Origin: Octopus sinensis | Taxonomy: Eukaryota | Reading direction: 5' to 3' | NCBI RefSeq assembly: GCF_006345805.1 | Contig: NW_021834799.1 | Span: forward strand, 1 to 45,526 | DNA length: 45,526 nucleotides | Shown here: positions 2,227-40,769 of the stretch, one piece after another | Layout of the letters: each line of letters begins with the position of its first letter | How positions within the stretch are numbered: position 1 is the first letter of the stretch | Notes under the pieces: generated by a model | What the model was told of the DNA's origin: nothing | Database searches by the model: none | What the model saw: the letters and a program-made list of their open reading frames with translations, nothing else | Position numbers and translations under genes: made by a program

Positions 2227-3744
2227 CAGTACCGCTCAAATGTTTCGGACCACCCTATTTTTCTCAATTTCCAAGTCAATCCTAAATTATTTTTATACGG
2301 TTCTTTAGAGAAACTTATTAGATAAGCTTAATACATTTATTCTATTCTAAATTTTCTTTAAATATTTTTGTTTGGCGCCAATTGAATATAATTGATTTTT
2401 GACTCGATCATATGTTCCGGACCAGTTGCAATCATATGTTTCGAACCAGTTAAATCTCTTTAAATTTAAATAATTTTTGATTCAATTAAAAACAAAAGAC
2501 TAATAAATAACAAATGCCGCGTGTTTCACTGGTTGATCGGGTCGCTATCATCACTTTTTTTAAAGATGGAGCTTCACAAAGAGAAATTGCCGAAAAATTA
2601 AAAATATCCAAAACTGCTGTTCAAAGAACAATTTCCAGATATTCATCCGTTGGACTATATTCCGACAGACCCAAATCTGGTCGACCGAGATTGTTATCCC
2701 CAAGATCTGAACGCAAATTAGTGAGAATTTCGAAAGCAGACCCCACAAAAACGGCAAATCAAATTAAATTTGATATGAAATTAAATTCTATTGTAAGCAC
2801 AAATACAATTAAAAGATGCCTACAAAGAAATAATTTGAATGGGCGAAAGCAATGCCCAAAACCAAGTCTTTCCATATGCCATAAAAAGGCTAGAAAAAAT
2901 TGGTGCATTGAGAAATTAACTTGGAGCCAAAATGATTGGGGTAAAATTATTTTTAGTGATGAATGCAAAATAAATTTGCATTCAAACACAAAAAATTATG
3001 TTAGAAGGCCACCAAACTCTAGATTTGACTCAAAATATTGTTTAAAAACACGAAAATTTTCTCCTAGCATTATGGTCTGGGGAGCTATTGCTGCAAATGG
3101 ATGGAGAAACATTGTCTTATGCATTAAAAATGTTGATTCCGCAGAGTATCAGAGAATTATAAATGTTGGACTCGAAAATTTTTATGATGAGACCATGTAT
3201 CTCCAGCAAGACGGCGCTCCTTCCCATCGGTCCATGTCGACAATGAATTTTTTTCAAAGGAAACAAATAAAAATCTTAGAAACTTGGCCGAGCCAGTCAC
3301 CCGAACTGAATATTATTGAAAATATGTGGTCGGTACTAAAACAAAAACTTTATGATCTGGAACCAAAAGATCTTCCAGAGCTCTGGAATTTGACCAAAAA
3401 AATTTGGTACGAGATTGATAATTCGTACATTGAAAAATTATACAATTCACTTCCAGAGCGAATAAATGCTGTTATAACGAACAACGGAGGAATATTAATT
3501 ATTAACTTTTTATAAGTTTAATAAATTTTCGGTTTTTTTTAAACTGGTCCGGAACATATGATCGAGTATAAAATCGATAATTTTAAAATTGCGCCAAACA
3601 TGAATATCTGTCCAAGTTTTTAAAATAGAATAAATGTGTTTAAGCTTATCTAATAAGTTTCTCTAAAGAACCGTATAAAAATAATTTAGGATTGACTTGG
3701 AAATTGAGAAAAATAGGGTGGTCCGAAACATTTGAGCGGTACTG
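2227..3744 (+). mobile_element. Tc1-family DNA transposon with ~200-bp IR/DR-type TIRs, near intact
   Basis: TIRs at 2227-2427 and 3542-3744 start CAGTACCGCTCAAATGTTTCGGACCACC. The outer ~100 bp and inner 26 bp are identical between ends. TA target duplications at 2225-2226 and 3745-3746. Confidence 0.96.
2514..3515 (+). CDS. Tc1-like transposase, DD35E spacing
   Basis: Paired-like HTH N-terminus, GRPR linker, IIFSDEC, QQDGAPSH and WPSQSPELNIIE, with 35 residues between the second D and the E. The tail GGILIINFL probably reflects a 1-nt loss from GGNINY*. Confidence 0.93.
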   Translation: MPRVSLVDRVAIITFFKDGASQREIAEKLKISKTAVQRTISRYSSVGLYSDRPKSGRPRLLSPRSERKLVRISKADPTKTANQIKFDMKLNSIVSTNTIKRCLQRNNLNGRKQCPKPSLSICHKKARKNWCIEKLTWSQNDWGKIIFSDECKINLHSNTKNYVRRPPNSRFDSKYCLKTRKFSPSIMVWGAIAANGWRNIVLCIKNVDSAEYQRIINVGLENFYDETMYLQQDGAPSHRSMSTMNFFQRKQIKILETWPSQSPELNIIENMWSVLKQKLYDLEPKDLPELWNLTKKIWYEIDNSYIEKLYNSLPERINAVITNNGGILIINFL

Positions 3745-4093
3745 TATGCCTTATAGTGGGAGCCTGGTTATGCTGAAGTTTACTTAATATGTTAAATCAG
3801 TAAAAGTAAAGATTACATTAAAACGGGATCATCAACATGGACTATTCACGGCCTCTGGTCCGTTAAAAATCTCAGTATTGAAGGGAAATGTCTATTTTCT
3901 ATTACTAGATTAGATGTACTGTTTCAATAAATCAATTTTTAGCCCAAAAAACTATAGAAATATTTTCTAGCGACCTATAAAGTCATCCAAATAAAATGTT
4001 TTGGTGATTATTGAGTTAAATTAAACTCAGGGAACCCAGATCTCGTACCAGTCCCATGCAAATTTCAGAGTTTCTTTGAATTAATTTAGTGTA

Positions 4094-4650
4094 CAGTGGG
4101 CTAAAAAAATAATGCCACCACTTAATAAATTTTAATATTTCAGGTGAAAGTATTGTTAATTTTTAATCATTTTTTACAAAATTAGAAAGTTTCAGAATAT
4201 AGAAAATAATTTTAAATCTCTAAAATGCTAATAATTGTTTGAGAGATGACCATTTTTTAATTTACTAGTGCTATTAATGGGGAAAAACTGTTGGCAAGGA
4301 TACATCATTAATATTCTGGTGCATGACCTTTCGCAACAATTACTGCCTTTAATCTTTTTTTTATTAATTTAAAGAATTGTTTTTTGGAAATTTTATTCCA
4401 TTCCTCCCGACAAGATACTTTTAACTCGATAATATTTCTTGGTTTTCAGTTTCTATCTCTACTTCAAAGTTTTTTTATAAGTTTTAAATTGGGTTTAAGT
4501 CAGGAAATTGGCTAGGACAATTCAATAAATTTATTAACCAGAAATAAGGGGAAAAAGAAAAGAATGATAAATATTCTTACAACAAATGAATATAAGAAAT
4601 CTACAAGAGGGAACTTTCTAAATTGGTCTCATACATTACAGGCAGAATAG
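4094..4650 (-). mobile_element. Degenerate Tc1-like remnant (3' part and one TIR)
   Basis: TA|CAGTGGGCTAAAAAAATAATGCCACC terminus at 4094. Minus strand reads CPSQFPDLNPI*N and EEWNKISKKQFFKLIKKRLKAVIVAKGHAPEY*. Inner boundary approximate. Confidence 0.65.
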
Positions 4651-8867: not shown

Positions 8868-9540
8868 CAGCGGTTCTTGACCTGGGGTCGAAAATCAGCC
8901 CAGATAGATCGTAAGGGGTCGAAAATGAAATACTTGGGGGTCGAAAATAATTTAATAATTTTTTAATTTTAAATTAAGGAGGACTAGGAGGACTAATTGA
9001 ATCCTATAAAATTGCAATGATTATTGCCAAAAATGAGAGTTCCCACGTTTCTAGTGAAAATCTCATCAAACCATCTATATCAGTGATTCTATCAGATTTG
9101 ATGGGTTTAAATCCTGACGAAATTTTAAAATCTGTGCCAATTAGCAATGATTCAGTTCGCCGCAGGATTGACGAAATGTCTGATAATGTTGAACATATTT
9201 TATGTGAAAGCCTTAAAAATACTATTTTTCGCTTCAAATTGACGAAATTCATATATGTGACAACCAATCAATTCTAATGGGATATGTCAGGTTAATCTTA
9301 TTAAATGCTTACCCTTTCTTACAGAAAATTTATTATTCGTCAAATATTTGGAAACTGCTACTACTGGATTTTCTATTTTTTCTATAGTCAAATTGATTTT
9401 AGTTGAGAAAAAGATTCCATATGAAAATTTGGTTTTTTGCGCCACAGATGGTGCAATGTCTATGGTTGGGAAGTATAAAGGATTTGCAGCATATTTGATA
9501 AAAATTTGTCCTAATGTGATTCATATACATTGCGTTCTAA
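8868..9540 (+). mobile_element. Buster-type hAT remnant (ZBED5/SCAND3-like transposase fragments)
   Basis: CAGCGGTTCTTGACC terminus. ENLIKP...PISNDSVRRRIDEM, TDGAMSMVGKYKG and IHCVL. Truncated. Confidence 0.8.
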
Positions 9541-9589
9541 TAGACATTAGAACTGCAGGGAAAGTATGTGACGTTAATAGATTGTAAAG

Positions 9590-10635
9590 CAGCGGTTCTC
9601 AACCGCGGCCCGCCATAATTTTGGTGCGGCCCGATTAAAATTATAAAAATATATTAAATATTTTTTGTTTTTATATTAAATATTTTGTACATTAATGTTT
9701 AAATAATTTTGTTTGTGATGTCTGATAAACGTGTTAAACGAAGTAGAAAAATTATTCATGAAAATCGTGCATTTAACCCCGAATGGGAGGAAAAATTTTT
9801 CGTTTTTGAAGAAAATGGTAACGCACATTGCCTAATTTGTCATTCTGTCATACGATGTCTTAAGACATATAATGTCGAGAGGCATTATTCGAAACATTCT
9901 TCTGAATATGATTCACTTCAAGGTGAATCAAGAAAAATAAAATTTCAATCTCTGAAATCAAATCGCAAACTACAAACGAATTTGTTAAAACAGCCCCACT
10001 TATCAAGATCCGTAACATTAGCTTCATACAAAATAAGTAATCTACTTGCAAAAAATATGAAGCCATATTCAGATGGAAAATTCATTAAGCAAGCTATTCA
10101 TATATTTATTTACAGAAGAATGTTGCTCTTCAGAAATTAAAAAAATTGGTCGAAACTTACAGCTTAGCAATGATACAGTTTCTCGGAGAATTGAGAGCAT
10201 ATCTGACGATCTTCATTACCAGCTACTCACTGAATCCAAGTTTTTTGTACACTCAAGTGAACTATTGGATTTTTGGGGTCGAATTCCACAGTGGAAATAT
10301 CCGAACTTGGTCGATAATGCTCAAAAAAATGCATCAGTCTTCGGATCAACGTATACATGTGAAGCTCTTTTCAGCAAACTCACGCAAATAAAAACAAAGT
10401 ATCGAAATCGATTGACTGATGGACACCTAAATCAACTTTTACGCACATCGTGTTCGACTTTTACTCCCTGTTTCGACAAAATAATAGACGCCAAACAGAA
10501 TCAAGTCTCGCATTGATTTTGATTACTTAATAAAGCCTTCTTTTCATTAATAACATAAAATATTTTTTGTGCGGCCCGCAAAGATATTTTTAATTATCGA
10601 TTTGGCCCATGAGCTAAAAAGGTTGAGAACCCCTG
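9590..10635 (+). mobile_element. Internally deleted hAT (Buster/SPIN, GTF2IRD2-like) element, 1046 bp
   Basis: TIRs CAGCGGTTCTCAA / TTGAGAACCCCTG with a perfect 8-bp TSD TTGTAAAG (9582-9589, 10636-10643). The BED finger (CLICH...ERHY) is fused near 10236 to the C-terminal dimerisation domain (FGSTYTCEALFSKL). Confidence 0.93.
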
Positions 10636-11229
10636 TTGTAAAGGAATTATTAAAATATTTATCGAAAAAATTAAGTTATATAAATACAACTTGGAAAAAA
10701 GAAATTATTATAACATTCCCGAATTCCAATCAATTTATCAAACATTTGATGATGAAGATATTAATAGAGTCTATTTGTTCCCATATGACGTAGTAAAGGT
10801 TTGTTGTGGAGTCATATTTGAAAGTTTCTATTTTTTCGAATTTCACTGAGGTGATAAGCCAATAGTTATGAATATGTTTTTACACCGTTTTTGCCTTTAA
10901 ATTTAAAAAGGATTTCTTCAAAAATACTAAGGAATTTTTTTTCGTCAAAGTTGAATTCGACAATTCTCTGAACCTCTTAGATGTTTGATGATGTGAATTA
11001 ATTCTGAATTTTCTTCTTTTTTATTTTTGATGAAAGTTGAATTCGACTATTCTCTGAACATATTCAATGCTTGATGATATAAATTAATTATAAATCTTGG
11101 TTTTTTTTCTTTATTTTTAATGATTTTTTAAGTACATATTTTGAAACACCTTTTTATAGTTTTATGGATGGTTTTATAAATTTCATTTTAATGTTAAGGA
11201 AAATTAGAATTTTTACTTCAAATTAAGAC

Positions 11230-11732: not shown

Positions 11733-13700
11733 TTAAAACAAATATACCAGTGGCCTTCTTCGTAATAACCATTGTATTTCTGTATGTAGCAACAAATTCT
11801 TATAACTTGCTCCCATTTCATCGCATAGAGAATTAAAAATTATAGAATTCTTAGATCGAGTTTTTATATAATAAATCATTTTTATGACATCATTCATAAC
11901 TGATTTCAAAGCAGGCGGGAGAGTTTTCAAAAGCAATACTTCAAGATGTAAAAACAATTTGTAGAAAGACATGGCTCTTCCTGCATTCCTCTCCTCACGT
12001 GCGAGCTCCCAAGCCCTCATCACCCAAATCCTACGTAACTCTCGCGGATTGGAAGAGGACCGGGTTTTCTCTGGAGCTTGCGAATTCTGGAAGGGATCTG
12101 GATTGGCCATTCCATCTAACATTTCACGCCAATGGGAATGGGATGATATCTCCAGCAAAGCTAAAATGGAAGCAATCAGACCTACATTGGATCAGCATCG
12201 CCTCGCTTGTTTCGGTGCCGCTGCCAGACCTGAAAGTGGGGCGTGGCTTAATGCCCTCCCTTGCTCCCAATCTGGAACCCTTCTCGATAATGACTGTGTG
12301 AGGATTGGCGTAGCAATACGCTTGGGACTTAATGTCTGTTCGGGGGGCCAATGCCGATGTGGTAGTAAAGTCGATACCAAAGGACTACATCCCCTGTCAT
12401 GCAGAAGGAGTGCTGGCCGTGCTCCCAGACACTCCGCTATCAACGAGACTATTTCGGCTGCGGTACAAGCAGCTGGATTCCCGACAGAACTGGAACCCGT
12501 TGGACTTGACCGTGGAGACAGTAAACGCCCAGATGGAGTCACCATTTTCCCGTGGAATAATGGGAAATGCCTCGCGTGGGACTCCACGTGCACAGACACC
12601 TTCTCAAAGACCAATATAGTTGACTCCGCGATCAGTCCAGGCTCAGCCGCTGAGAAGGCTGAGGCACATAAAGTTCAGAAATATTCCAACCTGTTGGACA
12701 ACTTCATCTTCTCCCCGATATCCGTAGAAACCTCCGGGGTCATGAGCCAAAAATCGTTCGAACTCGTCGGGAAAATCGGGGATCTGATCTCGAGAAGACG
12801 GAGAGAGCCTCGGGAGAAGCAATGGTTGTTCCAAAGAATATCCATTGCGATCCTGAGGGGCAACGTCTTCTCGATCATCAGTAGCTTTAGATTGTGATAA
12901 TCATTTTCGATCTCTTTGTCTTAAAAAAAAATTTATTTGTAGAAAGTATTTGATCATTCTGTGCTTTTAACAAAAAAATCTGAATTTAATTATATAAAAA
13001 CAAAGTAATAAATAATACCTTGCAGAAAAGAAATTGTAAATAATTGTTTCTGACTTTTCAGTACAAATATACATAAATAAGCAACTATGCAATTCTCGCT
13101 ACGTCAGTTGATTCGTCAATTTGCAAAGAATATAAATTGTTTTCCATTATAGATACCACTTGTTCTTCAATATCAAATTTAAATTGTACTAATTCTTTGA
13201 CAAATAATATTGTCAGATAAGTCAATTGTAATATTTTTTTTTCAAATTCCTCACCAAACATTGTTCGAACTATTAATTTACATACTGGAAAGATAAGATT
13301 TTCGGCAATCGTATAGGTTTAATTTTCTTAACAAACATTTCATTTTCTTAGCAAACAATTTCGATACTAGATAATTGTACTTACTCTAGATATGTTAATA
13401 TAATTATTAACAGTACCTATGCTTTTGGTTTAATTCTTTAAAATAATCAATTGAATAATCTTTATATTCCGGGTGCTTAAATGAAAAATATTTCTAAGTT
13501 TAGATAGAACCATTGATTCATTCGACAACACCCCCATGCAAATTAAGCATTGTGATAAACTATTTCCAGTGCCACAACAGTCAAAACCCATAGATAAAAA
13601 AGATGATTTGTAATAACGAATACTTCGTAAGCAACGCTATTATAATTGTTTTATAATAAAAATTTTCAAATCAAAAATTAAAAAAAATAAGTAAATATAC
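11733..13700 (-). mobile_element. Buster-type hAT remnant split by a CRE insertion
   Basis: Right part: BED finger QCLICMGVLSNESM, ENLIFPVC and YSLQIDESTDVA. Across the CRE junction it reads LKAQNDQILSTNC-FLHLE, then KTLPPALK...CDEMGASYKNLLLHTEIQWL. Confidence 0.82.
11969..12934 (+). mobile_element. 5'-truncated CRE-clade non-LTR retrotransposon (CCHC knuckle + restriction-like endonuclease)
   Basis: Uninterrupted ORF 11971-12897 with SGAWLNALP, CRCG..H.LSC..RH, KRPDG...WD.T...E..K..KY and QRISIAILRGN. A9 tail at 12923-12931. 12-bp TSD ATTTGTAGAAAG at 11957-11968 and 12935-12946. Confidence 0.9.
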
Positions 13701-14485: not shown

Positions 14486-17400
14486 TCAAAATCTCGATTT
14501 ATCTACACATGAGTGTACATTACAACTCTGCAGAGCCGCACTACAAAACCCATCATCTTGTAGCAACTTTGTCTTAACGTTTTTACTTCCAGGAGGTCGT
14601 CCACGTTTTTTAACAACTGGCTCTTGAATGACAGGGGTAGGCTTCTTCGATGCTTCAAGCGTCTTCTTATTCTTACTTCCTGCTGGCCTGCCTCGACGAC
14701 GAGCTACAATGATGTGAGAGTACAAACTAAAAGTGCAGTCTAACACGTCGGGCTACGATGAGTATATAAAGACAACCGAATTGGAAATGTCGAGGTAGGC
14801 TGCATCAAGTTGGGTGGAGACCCCTCCACTGGTTTCGTCCAAGAGCATCTTGAGGACTTCATTGGGGTTAAATGTCTGGTCCTCGGCAATGTACTGCCCT
14901 CCACTGACTACTGCCTTTTGAATCTATCGGATTAAGAGGGTTCATAAACTTCGCTTTTTTCCCGAGCTCTCTGCATAATTCTGTCCTCAATTGTGTCCTT
15001 ACAAATGAGTCTGTAGACCGTGACTTGCTTGGTTTGTCCCAGTCGGTGTGTTCTGTCCATTGCCTGCATATCCACAGTAGGATTCCAGTCAGAGTCGTAA
15101 AAGATTACCTGGGAAATTAATAAATCAAATACTGTGTCTGCGGCTGTCAAATTAATGCCAATTCCCCCAGCACGTGTGCTCAGAAGGAACACAAAAACAT
15201 CCTCATTGGCCTGGAAGTTTTCGACCATATCTTCTCGTTTATTGATTTGGAGTGACCCGTCAAGTCTAACATACGAAAACCCTCGTAAAGCCATGTAGTT
15301 CTATACTAAGAAGACAAACTCTACCTCGAGAATTGCAATCATTCTCGTCATTTGGGAAAAGATTAATACTCGGTGGTCATCCCTCTTTAGTCTGCATAAC
15401 AGTCTGTCCAGTGCGTACAACTTGCCTGAGTCACTCACCAATAAGGAGGCCACTAAATTGGTTGGGGGAGGTTAGTACGCGGGAGACGTATTTTATTCCA
15501 ATAATTGGACTGTATTTGGTGGAGGAATATTTCTGTCAACCAGCGCTGTTGGTCTTTGGTGAGACAAGAACGGTTAAGTGTAGACAATGTGAGTGATTGC
15601 TCGACAAATCGACTACTGGGACAATATATCTCTCTTGTGGAGCACATAACTTTGTCTTGACATATAAATAGACAGTCGGGATATGATATTGGTTCAGTCC
15701 TGTACTTCGGACGACCATTCTTTGACACGATTTGTACTTTTGAATAACCACAAAAGTTGTTCATATTCAGAAATGACTGATTTGAGAAATAACGGGAAGC
15801 AATGGGTTCCAACAGCATATGTTGAGTGGAAAATGTATTTCCCCACAATAGACTGTGGGTAATTTGTTTGAGGACATCCCTGGACTGGTTGTAGCAAGCA
15901 ATTCTATAAAATTATGACAGGAGATTACCGAATGTCAAATTGTGATGATTTGTGAAGTGAGTACTCCAAGGGAGACAAACCAGTGAAGGCCAGAAAAGAA
16001 AAAGAAGAGTTCAGAGAAACATGAATGTGTTGTGGGTGGAATATATTGAAGAGAGGAAGAGGACGACGTGGTAATAGTAGAGGGATGTTCACGACAGGAG
16101 GAGTGAAATGTTGTGTGGTAAAAATATCCCTCTTTCCAAAGAGGTCTGGATGGTTGCAGACTTTTCGGAATTGCATGACAATGTTCATTAATTGGACTTG
16201 CTGGGAAGACCCAAACCCATGCAGCTGGTGGGGAGAGATTTGGGTCTTCATTGCCTGGTACAAGAGTCGTTGTCGTTTAGAGAGAGGACAGTGGACCATA
16301 ACTTCAATCTTGGATGAGTCGGATGTGGGGTACCTTCTCAAAAAGTTCTGATTCGACGTCCTTTTTGACCCTTCTGAGCATAAACGGGTTTAAAATTGAA
16401 TGTAAACGAAGAAGTTGACCTAAAATGAAGAATGTAGGACAACTCTCGTTTATTTTAGATGGCTGGTCTGCACAGCCCTCAATGTCCTTGGAGAACCAGT
16501 GGTTGAATTCGTCGTGTGAGTCGAAGAGGGCAGGCATGATGAAGTGGAGTAGTGCCCATAACTGAAGTAAAGGGGACTTGTTACCTCCTGCATTGAGTTC
16601 TGAATGGGAGTGCCTGTGAGTAGTAGTCTGTTCCTGCATTTAAGGCTCATCAACGTTCTCCATCGCTGACTGAGAGTGAAGGAGAAAAATAACCTGCTCG
16701 TGCTCTTTATGGCCTGAGCCTCATCCAAAACGACGTACCACCAATTTATTCTTTGGAAGGACTTGAGGTCACGAACAGCAATTTTGTAGCTGGTGATGAC
16801 TACGTGGAAGGACGAGTCCTCGACATTGGCATCCTTCCATAACTGTCGTAACACTTTCCTGTCCTTAATATCGCCCCAGTAGGGAATGGTCTGAGTACTT
16901 ACATTCGACACTCACTTTGAAACGTGGACAGAATTGAGTCATCTCCTTCTGCCAGTTATACAACGTCGAGGACGGGGCAATCACCAGAAATGGTCCCCAA
17001 ATGCCCTTTCTCTACACATATAGTCAAAATATTAACCTCGGCCAAGTATGCAAGAAATGAAATGGTTTGTACTGTTTTACCCAATCCCATTTCATCGGCT
17101 AAAATTCCATTTATTCCCTGTTCGTGGAGGTTAGCCAACCACCTCATTCCCTACCCTTCACATCACATTATACCTTCAGTTGATAACATTTGAGAGTTCC
17201 CATAAACATGTCTGGTTGGGTTATCTCACCCTTGTCTTCTAACATGTCACTTCCCTCTCTCCATATTTGCGAACTGTACAACTCCGTCTGAGTCAACAAT
17301 TCTGACAGTTTCTTCCTCTCCACAACGACTTGCTTCTTTATTTTCTGCTCTACTCCTTTTTCTCCTTCTCTTCTCATACACTCCCGATACACCCGCCTTC

Positions 17401-19991: not shown

Positions 19992-20523
19992 CAGGGGTTC
20001 TCAACCTTTTTAGCTCAAGGGCCAAATCGATAATTAAGATTAGCTTCGCGGGCCGCACAAAAATATTTTATATATTTTTTATTTTCCATTTTACTAAATA
20101 TATTCGCATAAATATTAGATTCATATATGCATTGTGTGCTATATTTTTGAATTTGTCTGAGGAAATTAATTCGTAAAATTAATAATGGACGCTTTTTTAA
20201 TAATGCCGCAGTTCTATATCATGTTGCAAACTAATGAGTTCTAGTGAAACTTTGCAGGCGCATCCTTAATTTCCACGGTGAATGGAGTACGAATATTTTC
20301 ATTAAAGGAAGGAATTCTTTAAAATTCTAAAAATTAAATTTATAATGTACTCCAAAACGTGCTTCAAATTGATTAATAAATCACCAATTATGGATATGTT
20401 AACCTAAGAATGAATAATTAATTTAAACATTATTAAAAAATTAAAAAATTAGTTACTCTAGGGGCCGCAAAAAAAATCCTGGGGGCCACATGCGGCCCCC
20501 GGGGCCGCATTTGAGAACCGCTG
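19992..20523. mobile_element. hAT (Buster-type) MITE, 532 bp
   Basis: TIRs CAGGGGTTCTCAA / TTGAGAACCGCTG with a perfect 8-bp TSD CTGTAGAT (19984-19991, 20524-20531). Subterminal GGGCCGCA motifs are shared with the elements at 9590 and 31252. Confidence 0.93.
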
Positions 20524-22384: not shown

Positions 22385-24055
22385 TCACAGAAAAGTCTCC
22401 TTAGGTGTGGGCCTCTCAGAATTATCAGATTCCCCAGACTCCACAGAGAAATTATTCTTAAGATTTAAATTCTTTGAATCTTTCAAAGTCTTTGTCACTC
22501 TTCGAGTCATTACAGTGGAAAAATAAGATTCAAAGCTTGTGGGGGATACGTCGCTACTACAAGAGCCACATTCCTCCAAATCTTCATCAATTCGCTTCGC
22601 TTTAATATTTTTAACTCCATCAGCAATAATATCCTCATACGTTACTTCCCTTGGAAACAGACTGGCACACTCTTTAGCATACAGAACAGGATCTGTAAGT
22701 ATTAAAGGCTCAGTCGGTGTTGTCTGTTCCGCCTTTGGTGCACTACAGCAACCATCCCGCTCAAATATTTTCCGATATTTCTAAAATATACCAAACTCCT
22801 CAAAAAACTTTGAACTTCCTGAAAATCCTGTCCGAAAGTGACTCTGGAAACAGAGGAAAGCGATTTAGCAATTTCATAATTCCTTCAAAGGCATTACTTT
22901 TAATTTCCTCTACAAATATACTAATCGGGCAGACTTCTCAACAATCTGAGCAACACAAAGGACATGACACTCAGCACGCAGTCCCCCTCGACCAGGAACA
23001 TGTCATAAACCCTCAACGTGGCAGAAAATGGAATCTATCCATTAACTACAATCATAAACCCTCCCAGAAACATTGCATAAACCAACGAAATGTGTAGAGA
23101 GGAGGTATCTCGTTCTTCCTCTTGTAATATATATTAGTAATTTCATACCAAATGAAAGTATAAACGTTTGGAATAATGCTTTAGTAAGTAATCGTGATGT
23201 TCCTGTAGAGAAAATAGCCGTGGAAAATTCCGTGTGAAAATACCTAATAATTAATTATTTTTAACAATGTCTTGTAATTAAATAAATTTAAAATATATAA
23301 ATAGGCTTTAATGACTATTTATTGTGGTACACAACTAATGATGTGGTATAAACCATGGAGGTTATAAAGAGGGTCAGAGAAGAGTCTTTCGAAGCCCCAG
23401 AAGGCCTCCTCTTCCCCCATGTACATAAGGACAAGTGCTGCCACTTCGCTCATGCCCTGACAGTATCCAACTTCAGTATTATAGACAGAATATGCCAACA
23501 ACACATTAAATAACTGGATCTGCCTTTTAAATCAGTTTTCCAGCCAAACTTGTGTCCATACTCCTCGGAGAACGAAACATGATTCCTGAATGTCCTCTGC
23601 ACGTCCAAATGTATTTGTCTGACGTGTGGGGACAGTCTGAATGCCTGGATGAGGATCTTTTTATAAATTCCTTTTTTGATCTTCTTTATATGTTCTACGT
23701 TGAGAATAGCCTTCCAAGCAATGGGTCGAAGTCCTTGAGGGATGCCTGATTTGAGTTGCTTGAGAGTTTTCCTTCTCTTCTCCATGTCAGTGTTTAAAGT
23801 AAGCAGCAAATTAATGTTGGCAGCTATACGAGGCTTGCAGGAGAGGATTTTAGATTCTTGTGCGTCCTCTAATTTATTGCTTGGGATGTGAGGGTGGGGA
23901 GTACTGGAAGAAGCCGTAGCAGTCAATGTACTTGTGAGGAGTTTGGGCAGGTTTGGAAGATTGGTAGTATAACCCGATTATGGCACTACGTTCCTTTACG
24001 GATTGACTGCCAGGAGTGTCTTGAGTTAGGGGGCTGGGGTACCTTTTTTGTTCAT
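22385..24055 (-). CDS. TBC-domain RabGAP, USP6NL/RN-tre-like, 9 exons
   Basis: ERSAII...[39 protein letters not shown]|IFTRNFPRL...[28 protein letters not shown]. Introns: 24020-24042, 23880-23904, 23524-23549, 23244-23353 (110 nt), 23121-23148, 23035-23059, 22910-22934, 22781-22808. The junction at 23059-23060 is 1 nt out of phase. Confidence 0.82.
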
Positions 24056-25519: not shown

Positions 25520-26826
25520 CACTATCCGAGACAATTCTCCCTTTTATTCAAGATTACTCAAAACAAGACAAAATACAAAATCTATCAAAAATCGGGAAAG
25601 ATATATTGATTACTAACTTTGATCTCTACTATGGAAGCAAGTTTGTGATGTTTATGTTAGTTTAAGTACACTTTTGCTGGGCAGTTCGCTTATTCTTTGT
25701 CAGGGAAGGAGATATGGACTGGTTGGGAGGAATGGTGTGGGGAAGACTACTCTAATCAAGGCCATTGCAATGTATTAATTAAACGTGGTCACACAAGAAC
25801 ATATTTAAATACAATTTATTTATATTTAAATTAATAAATAATTAAATTTATTTATAGACGAGATTTACAATTTTCTGGTGATGTGTCAATGCTGCATGTT
25901 GAGCAGGAAGTCTCAGGGGACAACAGCAGAGTGATCGACTGTGTGCTCTCTGATGAGGTCAAATCTGTTAGAACAGCAAGTCAAACTCGAAAACACCTCC
26001 TCCTACCTCTAAATGAGTAGAGTGGCTGCAGAATTGGAGGCCATTGGAGCACATACAGGCCCAGCCCGGGCAGCCTCAATCCTCTCTTGCCTGGGTTTCA
26101 GTCACGTGGATCAAAAAAGACCTACAAGGGAGTTTTCTGGTGGTTGGAGGATGATAATTGCCTTGGCGAGAGCTCTGTTTGTCAAGTAAATGCTTAGTGG
26201 GATATTCTCAGGCCAGAACTGTTATTGCTGGACGAGCCCACGAATATGCTGGACTTGAGGGCTGTGATTTGGCTGGAGGAGTACTTGAGGACATGGCCTT
26301 GCACTCTTTTGGTCATTTCCCACGACAGAACGTTCCTGAACAACGTGGCCACTGACATTTATTTGATGAAGGACTTGAAGCTTGTTCACTACAAGGGGGA
26401 TTATGAAACATTCACGAAAACGCGGGAAAGAGATTTGGTTAACCAGCAAAAAGAATTTGAGTCACAACAAGCACTTCGAAAAACCACTCAAGTTTAAAAA
26501 TGGCGCCAAAATTTAGTAGGAATTTATCGATCGATTTCGTTAAAAAATGTTACAAAAAATGTCATTTGTGTCCCCAGTCGAGAAGGAGTGTCCCGTGGTC
26601 TTCAAGTTCCCAGTGGTTCCCCCCTCTGAGCTGACGGTGGTGAAATTTAACAATGTGTGTTTCTCCTACCCCAACAAACCCATATTCGAGCACCTTTCAG
26701 TGTCAATATCCATGACTAGTCGAATCTGCATAGTACGGAGAGTAGTGAGAGATGTAGGTGGGGGATAATGGATCGGGCAAGTCCACTCTCCTCAAACTAA
26801 TAATTGGACAACTCAAACAAGAAAGG
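25520..26826 (+). pseudogene. ABCF3: ABCF3-like (ABC-F family) unprocessed pseudogene
   Basis: GRRYGLVGRNGVGKTT, LHVEQEV, FSGGWRM, LLLDEPTNMLD and a second Walker A VGDNGSGKST. Introns 25641-25666, 25772-25857, 26186-26211, 26492-26519, 26733-26757. Frameshift near 25950, TAA at 26010-26012, linker deletion with TAA at 26541, and truncation just after the second Walker A. Confidence 0.82.
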
Positions 26827-26939
26827 GTATTTTTAGTGCATTTTGGTATTCATAAGATTATTTTTTCCTTAAGTTTTCCATTCCCTCCTTCAATGGTCAA
26901 AGAATCCGAATAAGGGTAGAGTCCATTTTTCCACCAGCA

Positions 26940-28455: not shown

Positions 28456-30574
28456 TCTTTTATTAATTTATTGTTGTCAACTCCTTTTGATTGTTTATTG
28501 CCATATTTTATTCCTTATTTTCAAACCATAATATTCCTCTTTTATTAATTTATAGTTGTAAACTCCTTTTGATTGTTTATTGTCATATTTTATTCCTTAT
28601 TTTTAAACCATAATATTCTTTTTTTATTAATTTATAGTTGTAAACTCCTTTTGATTGTTTATTGTCATATTTTATTCCTTATTTTTAAACCATAATATTC
28701 TTTTTTTATTAATTTATTGTTGTCAACTCCTTTTGATTGTTTATTGCCATATTTTATTCCTTATTTTCAAACCATAATATTCCTCTTTTATTAATTTATT
28801 GTTGTCAACTGCATTTGATTGTTTATTGCCATATTTTATTCCTTATTTTTAAACCATAATATTCTTTTTTTATTAATTTATAGTTGTAAACTCCTTTTGA
28901 TTGTTTATTGTCATATTTTATTCCTTATTTTTTAAACATAATATTCTTTTTTTTAATTTATTTGTTGTCAACTCCTTTTGATTGTTTATTGCCATATTTT
29001 ATTCCTTATTTTCAAACCATAATATTCCTCTTTTATTAATTTATAGTTGTAAACTCCTTTTGATTGTTTATTGCCATATTTTATTCCTTATTTTCAAACC
29101 ATAATATTCCTCTTTTATTAATTTATTGTTGTCAACTGCATTTGATTGTTTATTGCCATATTTTATTCCTTATTTTTAAACCATAATATTCTTTTTTTAT
29201 TAATTTATAGTTGTAAACTCCTTTTGATTGTTTATTGTCATATTTTATTCCTTATTTTTAAACCATAATATTCTTTTTTTATTAATTTATTGTTGTCAAC
29301 TCCTTTTGATTGTTTATTGCCATATTTTATTCCTTATTTTCAAACTATAATATTCCATTTTATTAATTTATTGTTGTCAACTGCATTTGATTGTTTATTG
29401 CCATATTTTATTCTTATTTTCAAACCATAATATCCTCTTTTATTAATTTATTGTTGTCAACAACTCCTTCTGATTGTTTATTGCCATATTTTATTCCTTA
29501 TTTTTAAACCATAATATTTCTTTTTTATTAATTTATTGTTGTCAACTCCTTTTGATTGTTTATTGCCATATTTTATTCCTTATTTTCAAACTATAATATT
29601 CCATTTTATTAATTTATTGTTGTCAACTGCATTTCATTGTTTATTGCCATATTTTATTCCTTATTTTTAAACCATAATATTCTTTTTTTATTAATTTATA
29701 GTTGTAAACTCCTTTTGATTGTTTATTGTCATATTTTATTCCTTATTTTCAAACTATAATATTCCATTTTATTAATTTATTGTTGTCAACTGCATTTGTT
29801 GTTTATTGCCATATTTTATTATTCCTTTTTTTAAACCATAATATTCTTTTTTTATTAATTTATAGTTGTAAACTCCTTTTGATTGTTTATTGTCATATTT
29901 TATTCCTTATTTTTAAACCATAATATTCTTTTTTTATTAATTTATTGTTGTCAACTCCTTTTGATTGTTTATTGCCATATTTTATTCCTTATTTTCAAAC
30001 CATAATATTCCTCTTTTATTAATTTATTGTTGTCAACTCCTTCTGATTGTTTATTGCCATATTTTATTCCTTATTTTTAAACCATAATATTTCTTTTTTA
30101 TTAATTTATTGTTGTCAACTCCTTTTGATTGTTTATTGCCATATTTTATTCGTTATTTTCAAACTATAATATTCCATTTTATTAATTTATTGTTGTCAAC
30201 TGCATTTGATTGTTTATTGCCATATTTTATTCCTTATTTTTAAACCATAATATTTCTTTTTTATTAATTTATTGTTGTCAACTCCTTTTGATTGTTTATT
30301 GCCATATTTTATTCGTTATTTTCAAACTATAATATTCCATTTTATTAATTTATTGTTGTCAACTGCATTTGATTGTTTATTGCCATATTTTATTCCTTAT
30401 TTTTAAACCATAATATTTCTTTTTTATTAATTTATTGTTGTCAACTCCTTTTGATTGTTTATTGCCATATTTTATTCCTTATTTTCAAACTATAATATTC
30501 CATTTTATTAATTTATTGTTGTCAACTGCATTTGATTGTTTATTGCCATATTTTATTCCTTATTTTTAAACCAT
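28456..30574. repeat. Tandem satellite, ~26 units of 82 bp (81-85), with higher-order structure
   Basis: Unit TTGTTGTCAACTCCTTTTGATTGTTTATTGCCATATTTTATTCCTTATTTTCAAACCATAATATTCCTCTTTTATTAATTTA. Period measured at 28471/28553/28635. Recurrent variants TAGTTGTAAAC, ACTGCATTTG and AAACTATAATATTCCATT. Confidence 0.97.
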
Positions 30575-31155
30575 TTACTAGACCTGTATAGACCACGTGG
30601 TTAGTTAGACTTAAAAGAACCTTCAGCCTTTGGAGTCCACTCTACGAGCTCCACTATCTTCCCGATCTATCATCCCAGGGCCCACACTTCCGTCAATTTT
30701 AACTCGTTTCGAACCATCCAGAAAAGGAACATGGTATGCATCCTCGAAAAGTCCACGCACCGCGATCTCTCGGTCACCGATCCCGTTAGTTTCCTCGTAT
30801 TTTGAGAGTACCTCCTCAACCCGGGCTTCATAATCCATTTGCAAAAGACCTCTCCGAAAGTCCAGCACAATGTTCTCCATCGTACGCTTAAGCACAATCG
30901 ATTGCATATAAGCAGTCAGATGTTCCCTCACTCTGATCGACTCCAAATATTTTTTTAAATATTTAGACACACTGCCATCCCATGTAAGGACAACAGGAAT
31001 TATATTTACTTTGGCCTTGTGAATCAGGGATAATTCATTAGCGCGCAAATCATATTTTCTTAACTTTTCGAGTTCTACTCGCTGTAAATTATTTTGAGAA
31101 GTAACTCCCACTTTCACAATTCAAATTACGTTCTCTTTCTTATCATATACCAATA

Positions 31156-34100
31156 TGTCGCGAGCCGAGCGCGCGACCGAGCACTAGACGCGACCAATCA
31201 AATTTACTCAATGTCAATCAATGTCAAAATAACTTATTTTATTGATTAGATCAGGGTTTCTCAAGTTTTTTAACGTCGGGGCCAAATCGATAATTAACCA
31301 TTGTCTTCGGGGCCGCAGAATAAATTAAATTAAAACTTTCATTAACTTTTAACTAATTTTTTTTTAGATTCATTTTTTATTCAGAAACCGAGATAGTTAG
31401 TCTTAATTAATTAAAGGAAAATGACTAAAACGAAAAATTGTTAACTAAAACGAAAAATTGTTAGCTATTTTAACTAATTGTTAACTAATTTGTCATAACA
31501 CGGAATATAGGAGGCACATGTAGATCGCAAAAGCTGGCATAAGTGATTATCAGTCAATTTATTTCGATATTTATTTTTTATGTGAATCATTTTACTGAAA
31601 ATTGACTCACATAAATAAGTGGATCCGAACATTGAAGCATATTTATAAGCATTTATGAGTATATTCGGATATTTTTCTTTGGAAGTGAACTATAAAATTC
31701 CATTAAATTTTCAATCTTTTGCACTGAGGTAAATTGCACATCTGATTGAAGGTCTATCAATTCTAATTGGAGTGATGGCGGAGCATTCTTAGGATCTATA
31801 TTGAATGGTGCTGCAAAAATTTTCATTGATGGCAAAATTTCATCAAAATTCTTAAAATAAACTAAATTTTAATAAACCTTAGAACGTTTTTCAAATTCAA
31901 CAATAAGGTGACTGATAATGGTAGTATATTTTTCAAATGAACCGTTAGCTTTATTTTCACTCAAACAAGTAAAATGAATTGTATCTTTGAGCATTATTTG
32001 ATCCCTCCAAAGTTTTAATTTTGATATAAAAGAAGCAATAGATCCATAGAGTTGATGGCAAAATTTATATTTCCCCTGTAATTCACAATTTAACGACGAT
32101 AAATGAGAGGTTAGATCTACCCAAAAGCTAAATCGGCAATCCACTCTTTACTGCTCAACAAATCATGGTATTTGTGGTCTTTAACAAATTCTCTTATTTG
32201 AGGGAGTAGTTCATAAAATCTAACTTCTATTCAAGCAAATATACCTTTTGAGGCACGCGGCACGACTCAACCATCGAACAGTGGTATGGTAAAGCACATC
32301 ATTATGCACTGTGTCAATTTCCACTAACATTTTTTTAAATCTCCTGTGATTGAGAGATTTACCGCGTATCCAATTCACAATGGACAACACCGTACTTATT
32401 ACATTTTGCATTTTAAGTGACTTTGCGATTATATTCTCCTGATGAATGATACAATGTTGCCAAAATATAGGATCAAGATTTTTTCAAGTCTCCATTCTGA
32501 ATAAAGTCCATGAAACCCTTTATTACGACCAATCATATTCGCCCCCCCATCAGTACATATGGAAATTATTTTGGAAGGATCAATGTCAAATTCTTTAATA
32601 CTTTCAAGGAATTCGTTAAGTACATCCATTCCTTTTGTAGTGCCTTTTAATGAACGAAGAGAAAAAAATTCTTCAGAAATTTTAAAATCCGAAGTGACAC
32701 CTCTAATGCATACGACCATTTGTTCGGTATCAGAGATATCTTTACTCGTGTCGACAGCAAAAGAATGATATAAAAAATCTTTCGATGTTCTATAAAAATT
32801 ATTTTTAATAGTAAAGAACTTGATTAGCTGACGGGCAAGGTCCTCAAAAATACATTCTATTCTTCTTGTAATAGTATCATTACTTAATGGTAATCGTTTT
32901 GCAATATTTTGTATATTTGACGGACAACATTCATCACAAAAAATGGAAATAGCAGTTTTTAATAATTTCTCCGTCAGAATAAGGTTTCATATTTACAGCA
33001 AGAAGGTGGCTAATTTTATAAGACGTTAATAACTGATGCTTATTTTCCACTGGTTTAAATATTGAGGACTGATTTTTAAATGACGTCTTTAATATATTGA
33101 GTTTTTTTTTCCTTGACTCTCCGAGATATAAATTGTATATTTCGGAGTGCTTCTTATAATGACGTTCAATAGTATAATTTTTCAATGAATTAATGACACA
33201 GTTGCATATCAAACAACAGCTTTACCATTCAGTTCAACGAAAAAAAACTTTTCTTCCCATTCAATTTGAAATTCTCTATTTTCTTGAGATAATGTTCGAT
33301 ATTTCTTTGATGGCATGAAAAAATACTCAACCTGAAATATATTTACAAACACGTGTAGTTAAAATATTATCTTTAATAATATTAATTTACAATTAATTTT
33401 ATATCCAAAATTTATTTTAAAGTTTGGAAGTCGGGGCCGCAAAAAAGATTCTCGGGGCCGCATGCGGCCCCGAGGGCCGCACTTGAGAACCCCTGGATTA
33501 GATCAAGGACAATTATTATTTCTGACTGTTATAACTTCTTAAGTCGTTTGGCATGTAGATGAATGAGGTGTTTGATTGTACAAAAACACAGTCTTTCTTA
33601 TGTGTTTTACCCACTCTTTGGTGTCATCCAAACTCATAATTTTTGAAAGGCTCCTTGTGACCGTCTGATTAAATCGTTCAACAATTCCCTGACTCTGGGG
33701 ATTGTTTGGTCTTCCATGTATTTGTCGAACACAAAACTCTTCACATACTTTTGTCACATGAGAATTTTTGAATTCTGTTCCGTTGTCTGATTGGAGAAAC
33801 TTGCAGGGACCAAAATCCATAAAAATATCATTCAGATTATTCGCCACCTCTACTCCACTTTTATTTTTAAGATTCCTTGTAAACGCATATTTCGAATATA
33901 CGTCTATTACAGACATTAACCAAGAAAAATCATTGTTTTCATTTTTAAATCTACAAAATAAGTTAATTTTATACCGTTTAAGATCAATTAAATCTACTTG
34001 AAATCTTTCATTAGGTAAATCAGCAACAATATGAGTTGAATCATCATATTGTTTTAGTGGAACTGAAAATTTGCAAATATTGCATTCTTTAACAACTTGG

Positions 34101-34563
34101 CGAATGATCTCTCTTCTCAATATAAAAATCTTCGCCTACATAAGGCTTCCAAAGCATTATGTCCGCAATGATTAGCTTCATGAATCTCACGTGCAATTAA
34201 TTCATCTCTTCTAAGCTCGTGGAAGCAATTACGAGCTTGTGTAGGCCGTTTACATCTTTAAGATATAGTTTCCCCTCTTTAATTAGGAAATTTTCTGCTT
34301 TCTTTTTGAGTCGATACTTCTTATGTTTGGAAAGATCGACCTCCTCATTATTGAGTATAGATCTTAGGAAATTATATTCATCTTGATCTTTTACAAACAA
34401 ACGCTGGCCCGACATAACAAAGTGTAGACAAAATTATGCTAGCGTGGATAATATTTTATCTGGGTGAGTATGGTACGCCGGCAATTAGACTGACAGGTGG
34501 ATGACAGGTATGACAGGTGTCAAAGTCGCGTCTAGCGCTCGGTCGCGCGCTCGGCTCGCGACA
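31156..34563 (-). mobile_element. Ginger2/TDD-like DNA transposon (integrase-type DD35E) carrying a nested hAT
   Basis: 39-bp TIRs TGTCGCGAGCCGAGCGCGCGACCGAGC(A/G)CTAGACGCGAC at 31156-31194 and 34525-34563 (1 mismatch). 5-bp TSD CAATA. Frameshifted ORF 34415-33539 with HHCC, FQVDLID, QSDNGTEF and GIVERFN. 24-nt intron at 33951-33974. Confidence 0.92.
31252..33495 (-). mobile_element. Buster/SPIN-type hAT, full length (2244 bp), frameshifted GTF2IRD2-like transposase with 3 introns
   Basis: TIRs CAGGGTTTCTCAA / TTGAGAACCCCTG with TSD GATTAGAT (31244-31251, 33496-33503). ATG at 33316, BED finger, TDGGANMIG, HCIIHQE, TVRWLSR and FGSTYLCES. Introns 32790-32819, 32220-32244, 31851-31877. Confidence 0.94.
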
Positions 34564-34586: not shown

Positions 34587-36140
34587 TAGGGCAACCGTAA
34601 ATATGACCTAAAAAATTTCAAATATGACCGATAAAATATGACTTATATGACCTTAAACGAAAAAATATATGCCCTTAATATGACCTAATAAATTTTTATT
34701 TTTATGTATTAATAAAGTTTTAATAAGGCTTATATTTAGAACTAATCACTCAAATTTATTGTAATATAACGAAAAGTAATATTTAATGTTATCATTTTTA
34801 AAGTTTCTATCCTTCTCCAACATCTTTTGAAGCATAGAAAAACTTCTTTCAATGGAAATAGTTGTTGCTTGACATTTCCATAATATCGAACAAATTTTTG
34901 GTGAACAATTATCAATCTTAGCAGTATAAATTTCTTTTAATCGATTTTTATCTATTCTTTTACGGAAATATTTAGATATTCCACATGGATCATCCCCAAA
35001 ATTTATCACATTAATAAATTTAACGGCATCCTCAATGGTAAAAAAAGTTTCTTGGCATTGATGTAATCCATCTAATATGTCACTATAACATGATTTTATC
35101 GATGCAAGGTTTCTTTCCAAATTAAGTGAATCTAAAACAGTTTTTACTTTATCTAAGATTTTCCCTTTTTTGTTAAATTCAGGACCAGAAACTATAGTGC
35201 GAACTGTATGCATGTTTTTCGAGTAGTAAAAGGCTGCACTAAGCCAGGTTCTCCATCTTGTAATTATTACTTCAGGTGGTAATTCTATATTGTCAAAAAG
35301 ATCTCTTCGAGATTTTTTTTGAGCAATGCAGTTTTCATCGTGGCAATCAGATTATTAATATCCCCATAGTGTGTACTAATTTTTAAGGCACAATTATGTA
35401 AAAGATGAGCAAAACAAGTGATGTGTATAACATTGTTATACATAATTGACAATGTTTCTGCAGCAGATATCATGTATAATGCAGCGTCGGTAACCAATAA
35501 AACAAAATTGAGTTAAAATCCTTTAAAGTTTCATCGATTATCTGGCAAATAACTGAAGCATTACATATTTCAACAGAAATGCAATTTAATAGATAAATTT
35601 TCGATGGATTACAAATAGTCCCCCCCAAAACATTCACAAATTTATTATTTGAAATTTGGGTTTCATCAACAATCAAAAATATTTTCAAATTTAAAATAAG
35701 ATTTTTTATTCGTTCAAAATTTAGAAGATATTTATCATATACCAATTTGCGACAATGGGTTTCTGATGGAACAGAAAATCCCAAATCGTCGAAAAACTTA
35801 GAAAAAAGATTGTGACGAATCTTATAAAGAGGGATATTCACACCCGTCATCATCGAAACCAATTTAAAACAAAAATCATTTGGAATTGCAATCAATTTCG
35901 ATTGACGCGAGTCGTATGTTTTACTTCTTTTTTTATGCATTTCCGTCTGTCTGTGTTGTTCCACGTTAAAACTTTTTGAAAAGTTTACCGGAACACAACA
36001 GAACTTGCAATTAAGTCCCCCATTAGTACTTCTCGTAAATTCGTGCGGATATTTATTTAATATTTTAAAGAGTTTGAATTCATTAGATTTTTTTGATTTA
36101 GGCATCTATTAATATACCTTTTTTTATATAAAAACCTTTA
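34587..36140 (-). mobile_element. CGGBP1-like / DUF659 hAT-related transposon, frameshifted, one end found
   Basis: Zn finger CKFC...QHRQTEMH, FLIVDET, VTDAALYM, TCFAHLLH, RWRTWL and IERSFS. Terminus TAGGGCAACCG at 34587 with clustered ATATGAC repeats at 34601-34685. No convincing second TIR or TSD. Confidence 0.75.
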
Positions 36141-37602: not shown

Positions 37603-37890
37603 ATGCAGCGTGGTGAGGACCAGAAAGAAATTCCCAAGAACCCTGTCAAGAAAGTAAAACGGAACTACAAGACAGAAATGTGCAAAGTTTTTCAAATTCA
37701 TAATTCTTGCCGCTTTGGGGATAAATGCAATTTTGCACATACGGTAGAGGAACTAAGGAGTCTTGAATCAATCGAAAATAAAGAGCAAGCCACATGTAAG
37801 TATTTTGCTCTTTTGGGTCATTGTTCCAAATCAGATTGTAAAGATATCCACGTTAAAAAGACGGAATCTCAGCTGAATCATGAAATTTGA
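37603..37890 (+). CDS. Small tandem CCCH zinc-finger protein (TIS11/ZFP36-like), 95 aa, intronless
   Basis: YKTEMC-x8-C-x5-C-x3-H followed by EELR, then a second C-x8-C-x4-C-x3-H finger. ATG preceded by an in-frame stop, ends TGA. Confidence 0.8.
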   Translation: MQRGEDQKEIPKNPVKKVKRNYKTEMCKVFQIHNSCRFGDKCNFAHTVEELRSLESIENKEQATCKYFALLGHCSKSDCKDIHVKKTESQLNHEI

Positions 37891-40175: not shown

Positions 40176-40373
40176 ATATGTAAATAAAAATCCCAACACG
40201 TTACTAAAATCAATTGAAGATGTGAGTACGTAAAATAAAAATCGATAGAGCAAATAGAAAAATTGATAAGACAACAAAAAAACAAAACAGATTTTGATTC
40301 AATAAAGAAGTGCTTTAAAAATAAATCCTTTTAAGTTAGTTATATATCGTATGAATGCCAAATAAAAATAAAT

Positions 40374-40446
40374 GGCCCTGTGGCCTAGTGGATAAGGCGA
40401 CTGGCTTCTATCCAGTCGATCGTCGGTTCGAATCCGACCAGGGTCG
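40374..40446 (+). tRNA. tRNA-Arg, anticodon TCT, 73 nt, no intron
   Basis: Acceptor stem GGCCCTG/CAGGGTC, D arm GCC-TAGTGGATAA-GGC, anticodon arm ACTGG-CTTCTAT-CCAGT, T arm GTCGG-TTCGAAT-CCGAC, discriminator G, downstream T run. Confidence 0.96.
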
Positions 40447-40769
40447 TATTTTTTTAATTTTATAATTAGGAATCAAACTGTTTTCTTTTTTGTATTGAAA
40501 AATTAGGAATATGAAATTCAATTTTGATCAAATTTAATCATAATTAGTTGTCATTTTATTAGCTTGACTTTGACGTCCTAACAGTTCTTTGTTATTCATC
40601 AACATATTATAGACGGCTCATTTTGTGAATGCTTTTCGTTCCTCTAATTATTTAAATTTCTTGAAATCACTAAGAAATGCAGTATTTAAAAACGTTTTTT
40701 GAAAATTTTTATGTCAATTTAAAGTGATGCGTGGCTTAATGACATCCCTTGCTTTCTTTCTAAATTTTT

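Follow-up and report, generated by a model that had tools for sequence, protein, structure and literature searches.

A Buster-type hAT transposon with three putative micro-introns in its transposase gene, found on a contig deposited as Octopus sinensis

The stretch of DNA analysed here comprises positions 1 to 45,526 of the forward strand of contig NW_021834799.1 (NCBI RefSeq assembly GCF_006345805.1), deposited as Octopus sinensis; these 45,526 nucleotides (nt), taken whole, are called the window. The window carries a complete DNA transposon of the hAT superfamily, flanked by a target-site duplication (TSD), ending in terminal inverted repeats (TIRs) and encoding a transposase on the minus strand (Table 1). 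The coding region of the transposase is interrupted by three short segments with GT..AG ends, referred to below by their lengths as i30, i25 and i27 in the order in which the gene is read. Comparison with near-identical copies, with homologues from other animals and with the genes nearby makes it very probable that this is an autonomous Buster-type element with a four-exon transposase gene, that its spliceosomal introns of 30, 25 and 27 nt are of the size usual in its host, and that the host is an animal with micro-introns.

The 8-bp TSD reads ATCTAATC on the strand of the element, and subterminal motifs of the GGCCCCGA type are present at both ends. A few bases upstream of the transposase ATG there is a 19-nt GT..AG stretch (GTTTGTAAATATATTTCAG, 33322-33340, minus strand), which may be a micro-intron of the 5' untranslated region or may have arisen by chance. 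The TSDs of the window copy and of five other insertion loci, described below, all fit the pattern nnnTAnnn, with TA at positions 4-5; this is the consensus that Arensburger et al. (2011) reportedly gave for the Buster family, as against nTnnnnAn in the Ac family. In the transposase, Pfam recognizes the hAT C-terminal dimerisation domain Dimer_Tnp_hAT (PF05699) with 28 bits against a cut-off of 21.4 (E = 1.9e-6). The score for a SPIN-DOC-type zinc finger, 26.1 bits, is just below its cut-off of 27.3, and that for DUF4371, 16.7 bits, is below its cut-off of 32.1. Alignment of the spliced protein with 19 homologues from other animals (20 sequences) places D179, D246, E544, C279/H282 (the CxxH motif) and W339 (the RW motif) in invariant or near-invariant columns. 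We take D179, D246 and E544 to be the catalytic residues from knowledge of the motifs, not from a structure, and a comparison of the spliced transposase with PDB sequences gave no match. By every feature tested, the transposon belongs to the hAT superfamily and shows the target pattern of the Buster type. The best database matches are 'GTF2IRD2-like' proteins with FAM200/ZBED5 Pfam domains. Buster-family hATs and their domesticated relatives (TcBuster, AeBuster, Charlie; GTF2IRD2, FAM200, ZBED5) share with the present element the nnnTAnnn 8-bp TSD, TIRs of ~16 bp starting with CAG, an N-terminal zinc finger, a DDE/RNase-H-like core with CxxH and RW, and the hAT dimerisation domain.

Table 1. 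Position of the hAT element, its parts and other annotated features in the window (TSD, target-site duplication; TIR, terminal inverted repeat; MITE, miniature inverted-repeat transposable element; GC, fraction of G+C)
Feature	Position	Strand	Details
Complete hAT (Buster-type) transposon	31252..33495	-	2,244 bp; bounded by TIRs and 8-bp TSD; 99.3-99.8% identity to five other insertions
TSD (left) GATTAGAT	31244..31251		same 8-mer at 33496-33503
TSD (right) GATTAGAT	33496..33503		8-bp TSD, as in hAT elements
TIR CAGGGTTTCTCAAGTT	31252..31267	+	14/16 match to reverse complement of 33480-33495
TIR CAGGGGTTCTCAAGTG	33480..33495	-	14/16 against partner; TIRs as in hAT elements
Exon 1	32820..33316	-	ATG at 33316; zinc finger and N-terminal region; window copy broken at 33217/33216 and 32960
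Intron candidate i30	32790..32819	-	GTTCTTTACTATTAAAAATAATTTTTATAG; 30 nt, GT..AG, phase 2, GC 0.13; in frame, stop-free
Exon 2 (predicted)	32245..32789	-	catalytic D179 and D246, CxxH, RW motif; window copy broken at 32485/32484
Putative intron i25	32220..32244	-	GTATATTTGCTTGAATAGAAGTTAG; 25 nt, GT..AG, phase 2, GC 0.28; frameshift, then TAG
Exon 3 (predicted)	31878..32219	-	all-alpha insertion domain; window copy broken at 32127/32126
Putative intron i27	31851..31877	-	GTTTATTAAAATTTAGTTTATTTTAAG; 27 nt, GT..AG, phase 0, GC 0.11; in-frame TAA
Exon 4 (predicted)	31474..31850	-	catalytic E544 (CESIFS), hAT dimerisation domain, stop codon 31476-31474; window copy broken at 31683/31682
Subterminal 20-bp tandem repeat	31424..31467		2.2 copies; 3' non-coding end
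532-bp MITE	19992..20523	-	TSD CTGTAGAT (TA at positions 4-5); derived from sister family F1b
Internally deleted family-2 hAT	9703..10641	+	~55% amino acid identity to studied transposase
Host INO80-like gene	14935..17173 (about)	-	nine GT..AG introns

The three segments had been proposed in an initial annotation of the window, and their coordinates, lengths and GT..AG ends are all correct when read on the minus strand. The junctions it had restored (QLIK/, LKR/FYELLPQI and FEKRSK/NFDEIL, the slash marking the splice) are also borne out, for excision gives QLIK/TSKDF at i30, CLKR/FYELLPQI at i25 and EKRSK/NFDEIL at i27. Its further claim, that two of the segments contain stops and must be spliced out for function, holds for i25 and i27, both of which bring a stop codon into the frame. 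If translated, i30 would contribute ten extra residues, FFTIKNNFYR, in a linker 13 residues before the first catalytic Asp. Colinearity with homologues delimits the segments without reference to their splice ends: the spliced protein aligns without gaps to all 19 at each of the three junctions, i30 is an exact 30-nt excess over every one of them, and excision of i25 restores the conserved CLKR/FYxLLPEI. A segment delimited by colinearity would carry GT..AG ends by chance with a probability of f(GT) × f(AG) = 0.0021, and three such segments with one of ~1e-8. The segments are also AT-richer than the exons, whose GC is 0.316. Inspection by eye found no duplicated intron flanks, the signature of intron gain by tandem duplication. 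On these comparative grounds, we hold with good confidence that the three segments are real micro-introns gained in this lineage.

The top database match to the spliced protein is a 'GTF2IRD2-like' protein of O. sinensis of 365 amino acids (aa), with 96% identity, all other matches having 53% or less. The cluster to which it belongs has four members, all from O. sinensis assembly GCA_006345805.1. Sister loci, designated L001, L005/L006, L007 and L008, were read on contigs VCDQ01002078.1, VCDQ01011168.1, VCDQ01006159.1, VCDQ01013161.1 and VCDQ01002361.1. They are five insertion sites, each with its own flanks; L005 and L006 appear to represent a single locus assembled as two haplotigs. Their TSDs are ATCTAGAC, CACTAGAC, (G/A)TATAGAC and GTCTAGAT, different from that in the window; the 8-bp duplication at L007 matches at 7/8 positions, and each of the other loci has a duplication of its own. 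Whether other copies carry the segments was a check named in the initial annotation, and the answer is affirmative for i30 and i27 at every locus and negative for i25 at L005/L006. All six copies in the alignment, from the window and five other loci, share the same sequence of i30. That of i27 is one base shorter at L005/L006, and i25, present in the window, L001, L007 and L008, has been removed at L005/L006 by a 272-bp deletion.

Two of the sister copies, L001 and L007, are intact, and they are so only after excision of the segments. Removal of i25 and i27 leaves in each an uninterrupted open reading frame (ORF) of 597 aa, and removal of all three leaves one of 587 aa that starts with Met and ends at the natural stop; L007 is identical to the family consensus. 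The annotated 365-aa model begins at the ATG, is translated straight through i30 and terminates at the stop within i25; a 362-aa model comes from L005/L006, the locus in which i25 is deleted. The 'GTF2IRD2-like' entries XP_029657494.1, XP_029655752.1, XP_029656231.1, XP_029655454.1 and XP_029654578.1 of O. sinensis RefSeq are truncated models of this transposon. That the copies are nearly identical, that two have an intact spliced ORF and that the TSDs are perfect suggests that the family transposed very recently, and the transposon is probably young and still active.

The copy in the window is in worse condition. The initial annotation overlooked five further frame breaks (Table 1), and this copy therefore stays broken after the three segments have been excised. 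Alignment with the sister copies resolves the breaks into five single-base homopolymer indels. None is shared with another copy, and the window copy carries no substitution of its own. Extra micro-introns were considered as their cause and ruled out, as at each break the window copy differs from all sister copies by one base in a homopolymer run. A second full-length transposase of hAT type, unrelated in appearance, lies close by on the minus strand (34749-36105) and has a zinc finger and the motifs 'VDETQ', 'CFAHLLHN' and 'ISIERSFS'; it was checked for micro-introns and has none. It has exactly two frame breaks (~35490 and ~35330), both in A-runs. Because the five indels are private and homopolymeric, are accompanied by no private substitutions and have counterparts in the second hAT, they are probably errors of long-read assembly rather than signs of decay. 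All unexplained breaks in the two hATs are one-base homopolymer changes, so other ORFs of the window may be falsely broken as well.

Buster/SPIN/Charlie transposases had been described in the initial annotation as usually single-exon. The description is accurate for the Buster/FAM200 clade, but hAT transposases with introns exist, Tol2 having four exons (PMC2874221). The two nearest relatives whose loci were read, P0003 and P0004 (52-53% identity), are single-exon genes of 1,800 nt (599 aa) and 1,806 nt (601 aa), and thus lack the ordinary introns that might have been expected at the same sites if i30, i25 and i27 were shrunken remnants. A third relative, P0002 (660 aa), is on a contig of only 2,363 bp. 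No uninterrupted copy of the present hAT family was found among 5.8e9 proteins.

Evidence on the age of the segments comes from other hAT families of the same genome. A sister family, F1b, is represented at L001 (~2985-4370) by a decayed deletion derivative with ~65% nt identity over ~980 nt. It contains a 27-nt GT..AG segment, GTACATTTATATAAATTTAATTTTTAG, identical in position and phase to i27 (QFEARFG/NFKKFLPLMKIF). At the i25 site F1b has a degraded 10-nt remnant with its AG at the same phase, and the region of i30 is deleted. The MITE of the window, a derivative of F1b whose copies in the window and at L001 are 93-96% identical, retains the segment corresponding to i27 in a form of 24 nt (20327-20350). 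The presence of i27 in F1b means that i27, at least, is older than the split of the two families, and its splice dinucleotides, length and phase have been kept across ~35% DNA divergence while its sequence changed. The more distant family-2 hAT (ORF 10073-10516) has no insertion at the i30 site.

The genes that accompany the transposon have equally small introns. Those of the INO80-like gene are 23, 25, 25, 24, 23, 24, 25, 24 and 24 nt long, and a DHX8-like helicase gene ~8 kb from the L008 copy has three of 24-25 nt. Host introns are accordingly 23-25 nt (n = 12, nine from INO80 and three from the DHX8-like gene) against 25, 27 and 30 nt in the transposon; the transposon introns are slightly longer, and much AT-richer, than the nine of INO80. 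Together with the single-exon outgroups and the occurrence of i27 in F1b, these lengths agree with the initial proposal that the element acquired host-type introns while resident in a micro-intron lineage. A length of ~30 bp was formerly taken as the lower limit for animal introns, and introns of <30 nt have been reported only for dicyemids and myxobolid myxozoans among animals (PMC13644364). The median intron of dicyemids is 27 bp, two thirds being <30 bp (PMC6543705), and Octopus sinensis is host to Dicyema japonicum, which is taken from its renal sac (PMC6736024). Because the introns of its DHX8-like gene are 24-25 nt, the L008 contig would appear to come from the same kind of genome as the window, despite its O. 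sinensis label. Host introns of 23-25 nt imply that the 'octopus' contigs are probably parasite contamination, and the window and these contigs are most likely DNA of a dicyemid, a parasite of the octopus.

A number of observations weigh against the account of an active transposon with micro-introns in a dicyemid. Taken literally, the window copy is a pseudogene, its longest ORF after segment excision being 35 aa. At each site 5-13 other GT..AG deletions likewise reopen a long ORF, so that colinearity and the intron of the sister family have to carry the argument. At no site does a segment other than the proposed one fit the 19 homologues without gaps; the nearest competitor, a 24-nt option at the i27 site, adds one residue and loses a conserved Arg. 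The copies are too alike for a test of selection (dN/dS, the ratio of non-synonymous to synonymous substitution rates), and the protein search with the spliced product, which covered 5.8e9 proteins, returned no spliced ORF from any transcriptome. Splicing of i30 is not obligatory, as it is in frame and free of stops. The host genes have no close relative in the database (best matches 63-68% identity for INO80 and 45-51% for ABCF3), nor did a direct match to any named dicyemid emerge, and for this reason the dicyemid assignment stays indirect, although matches as weak as these fit a fast-evolving, poorly sampled lineage.

The open frame of i30 also gives substance to the view that just two of the introns are real, i30 being either a coding, lineage-specific insertion of ten residues or a segment spliced part of the time. 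The RefSeq and ORF models read through i30, and its place in the linker before the first catalytic Asp suits an insertion of this kind; its GT..AG ends, a GC content far under that of the exons, and the exact 30-nt excess over both the 19 homologues and family 2 do not. We regard this view as a distinct, if lesser, possibility. It is also conceivable that the introns are not new gains: a hAT ancestor may already have had them, and they may have shortened along with those of the host. All host introns of the lineage are miniaturised (INO80 here; PMC6543705), and the outgroup loci inspected were few. Against such shrinkage are the single-exon structures of P0003 and P0004, the short contig that holds P0002, and the family-2 hAT of the window with nothing inserted at the i30 site, and we consider it unlikely.

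A more radical proposal would take the segments for short insertions that disabled a master copy, now dead, and would make every copy a non-autonomous element mobilized in trans by a different transposase. In its favour, the copy in the window is broken, that at L005/L006 derives from an internal deletion, the genome also contains related hAT families and a MITE, and the intron reading is drawn from DNA sequence. It would then be difficult to explain why three of three segments have GT..AG ends and host-like lengths, why their excision is exactly colinear with 19 homologues, why a 1.76-kb ORF is otherwise perfect in two copies, and why i27 kept its GT, AG, length and phase down to F1b; nor does the protein database hold an uninterrupted copy. 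This proposal strikes us as quite improbable, and even less credence is due to the idea that the transposon is genuine octopus DNA, or was recently transferred between octopus and parasite. The contigs of all five sister loci were deposited under the name O. sinensis, and their products are octopus proteins according to RefSeq. However, the L008 contig and the window physically link copies of the transposon to the DHX8-like and INO80 genes with introns of 23-25 nt, a class of intron reported among animals only in dicyemids and myxobolids (PMC13644364). Moreover, the INO80 protein is at most 68% identical to any database protein, and for a real cephalopod gene we would expect a much closer match.

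If the element is autonomous and its introns are real, its life cycle may be sketched as follows. The hAT would be transcribed in the host, and the host spliceosome would remove i25 and i27 and probably i30 as well, retention of i30 adding only ten residues. The product, a 587-aa DDE transposase, would bind the TIRs and the subterminal GGCCCCGA-type motifs and would cut and paste the hAT, leaving 8-bp duplications at TA-centred targets. The introns would have been inserted after the split from the intronless relatives in other animals and before the two families diverged inside this genome. It may be speculated that retention of i25 gives a protein of 355-365 aa with the zinc finger and both catalytic Asp residues, and without the Glu and the dimerisation domain. 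A wider scenario would join these elements: two or three AT-rich introns of 25-30 nt gained de novo after entry into the dicyemid; a transposon confined to its host, since ordinary animals probably could not splice introns of 25-27 nt, and inert in the octopus; and the i25-retention protein, with its DNA-binding region and no catalytic Glu, as a possible repressor in the style of the P element. The scenario in its entirety is doubtful. Were it true, it would provide intron gains of a rare, datable kind in an animal whose introns are miniaturised.

Transposase genes with introns are already known, and so are dicyemid genes with ultra-short introns. Both Ac and the P element have intron-bearing transposase genes, and retention of the third intron of the P element constitutes control at the level of splicing. 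Tol2, itself a hAT, has the four exons mentioned earlier, and Minos (Tc1/mariner) has one 60-bp intron (PMC2874221). As with all four of these transposons, the transposase described here appears to need host splicing, and regulation at this level is possible in principle; the suggestions of such control and of a barrier to horizontal transfer in the initial annotation are reasonable as hypotheses. The difference from these transposons is that the introns are 25-30 nt long and occur in a clade otherwise intronless; the two nearest relatives examined are single-exon, whereas the ORF here is split by three. The ultra-short introns of dicyemids (and of myxobolid myxozoans) resemble those of the transposon in length, in GT..AG ends and in the weakness of any further consensus, but the known examples sit in host genes. 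A literature search found no description of dicyemid DNA transposons or of micro-introns inside transposons. What appears to be new is the combination: a hAT of the Buster/FAM200 clade, with its nearest examined relatives intronless, and three introns of no more than about 30 nt apparently gained in the lineage.

Such an element would be a case of a mobile element adopting what is most unusual about the gene structure of its host. The transposon also offers comparative material on intron gain, with intronless outgroups on one side and an intron common to two diverged families of one genome on the other, and the system lends itself to asking whether ultra-short introns restrict a transposon to hosts able to splice them. 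From a practical standpoint, the truncated RefSeq models, at least five in number, point to parasite contigs in the O. sinensis assembly, and standard gene finders miss introns of <30 nt.

The remainder of the window is mostly transposons. Fragments of hATs from other families, one of them with the motif 'LQIDESTDV', are found at 8978-9584 (plus strand) and 13088-13318 (minus strand), and the region is crowded with hAT remains. Further mobile-element ORFs were recognized by eye at 732-1598, 2511-3512 and 11965-12894 on the plus strand and at 30626-31120 and 33542-34135 on the minus strand. They include a pogo/Tigger-like DDE ORF, an intact-looking Tc1/mariner transposase of 333 aa, for which no exact match was on record, and retroelement-like ORFs; a retroviral-type integrase core, also identified by eye, directly adjoins the hAT studied here. 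An 82-bp satellite occupies 28458-30574, with ~26 copies matching at 91%, a GC of ~0.21 and a strong skew of T over A and of C over G. In addition to INO80, host features are present at ~25600-26900 (plus strand), 23453-23977 (minus strand), 37603-37887 (plus strand) and 40373-40447 (plus strand). They comprise an ABCF3-like ATPase gene interrupted by short introns, one exon of TBC/RabGAP-like type and one of CCCH zinc-finger type, and a tRNA-Arg(TCT), the tRNA being the sole match in an Rfam scan.

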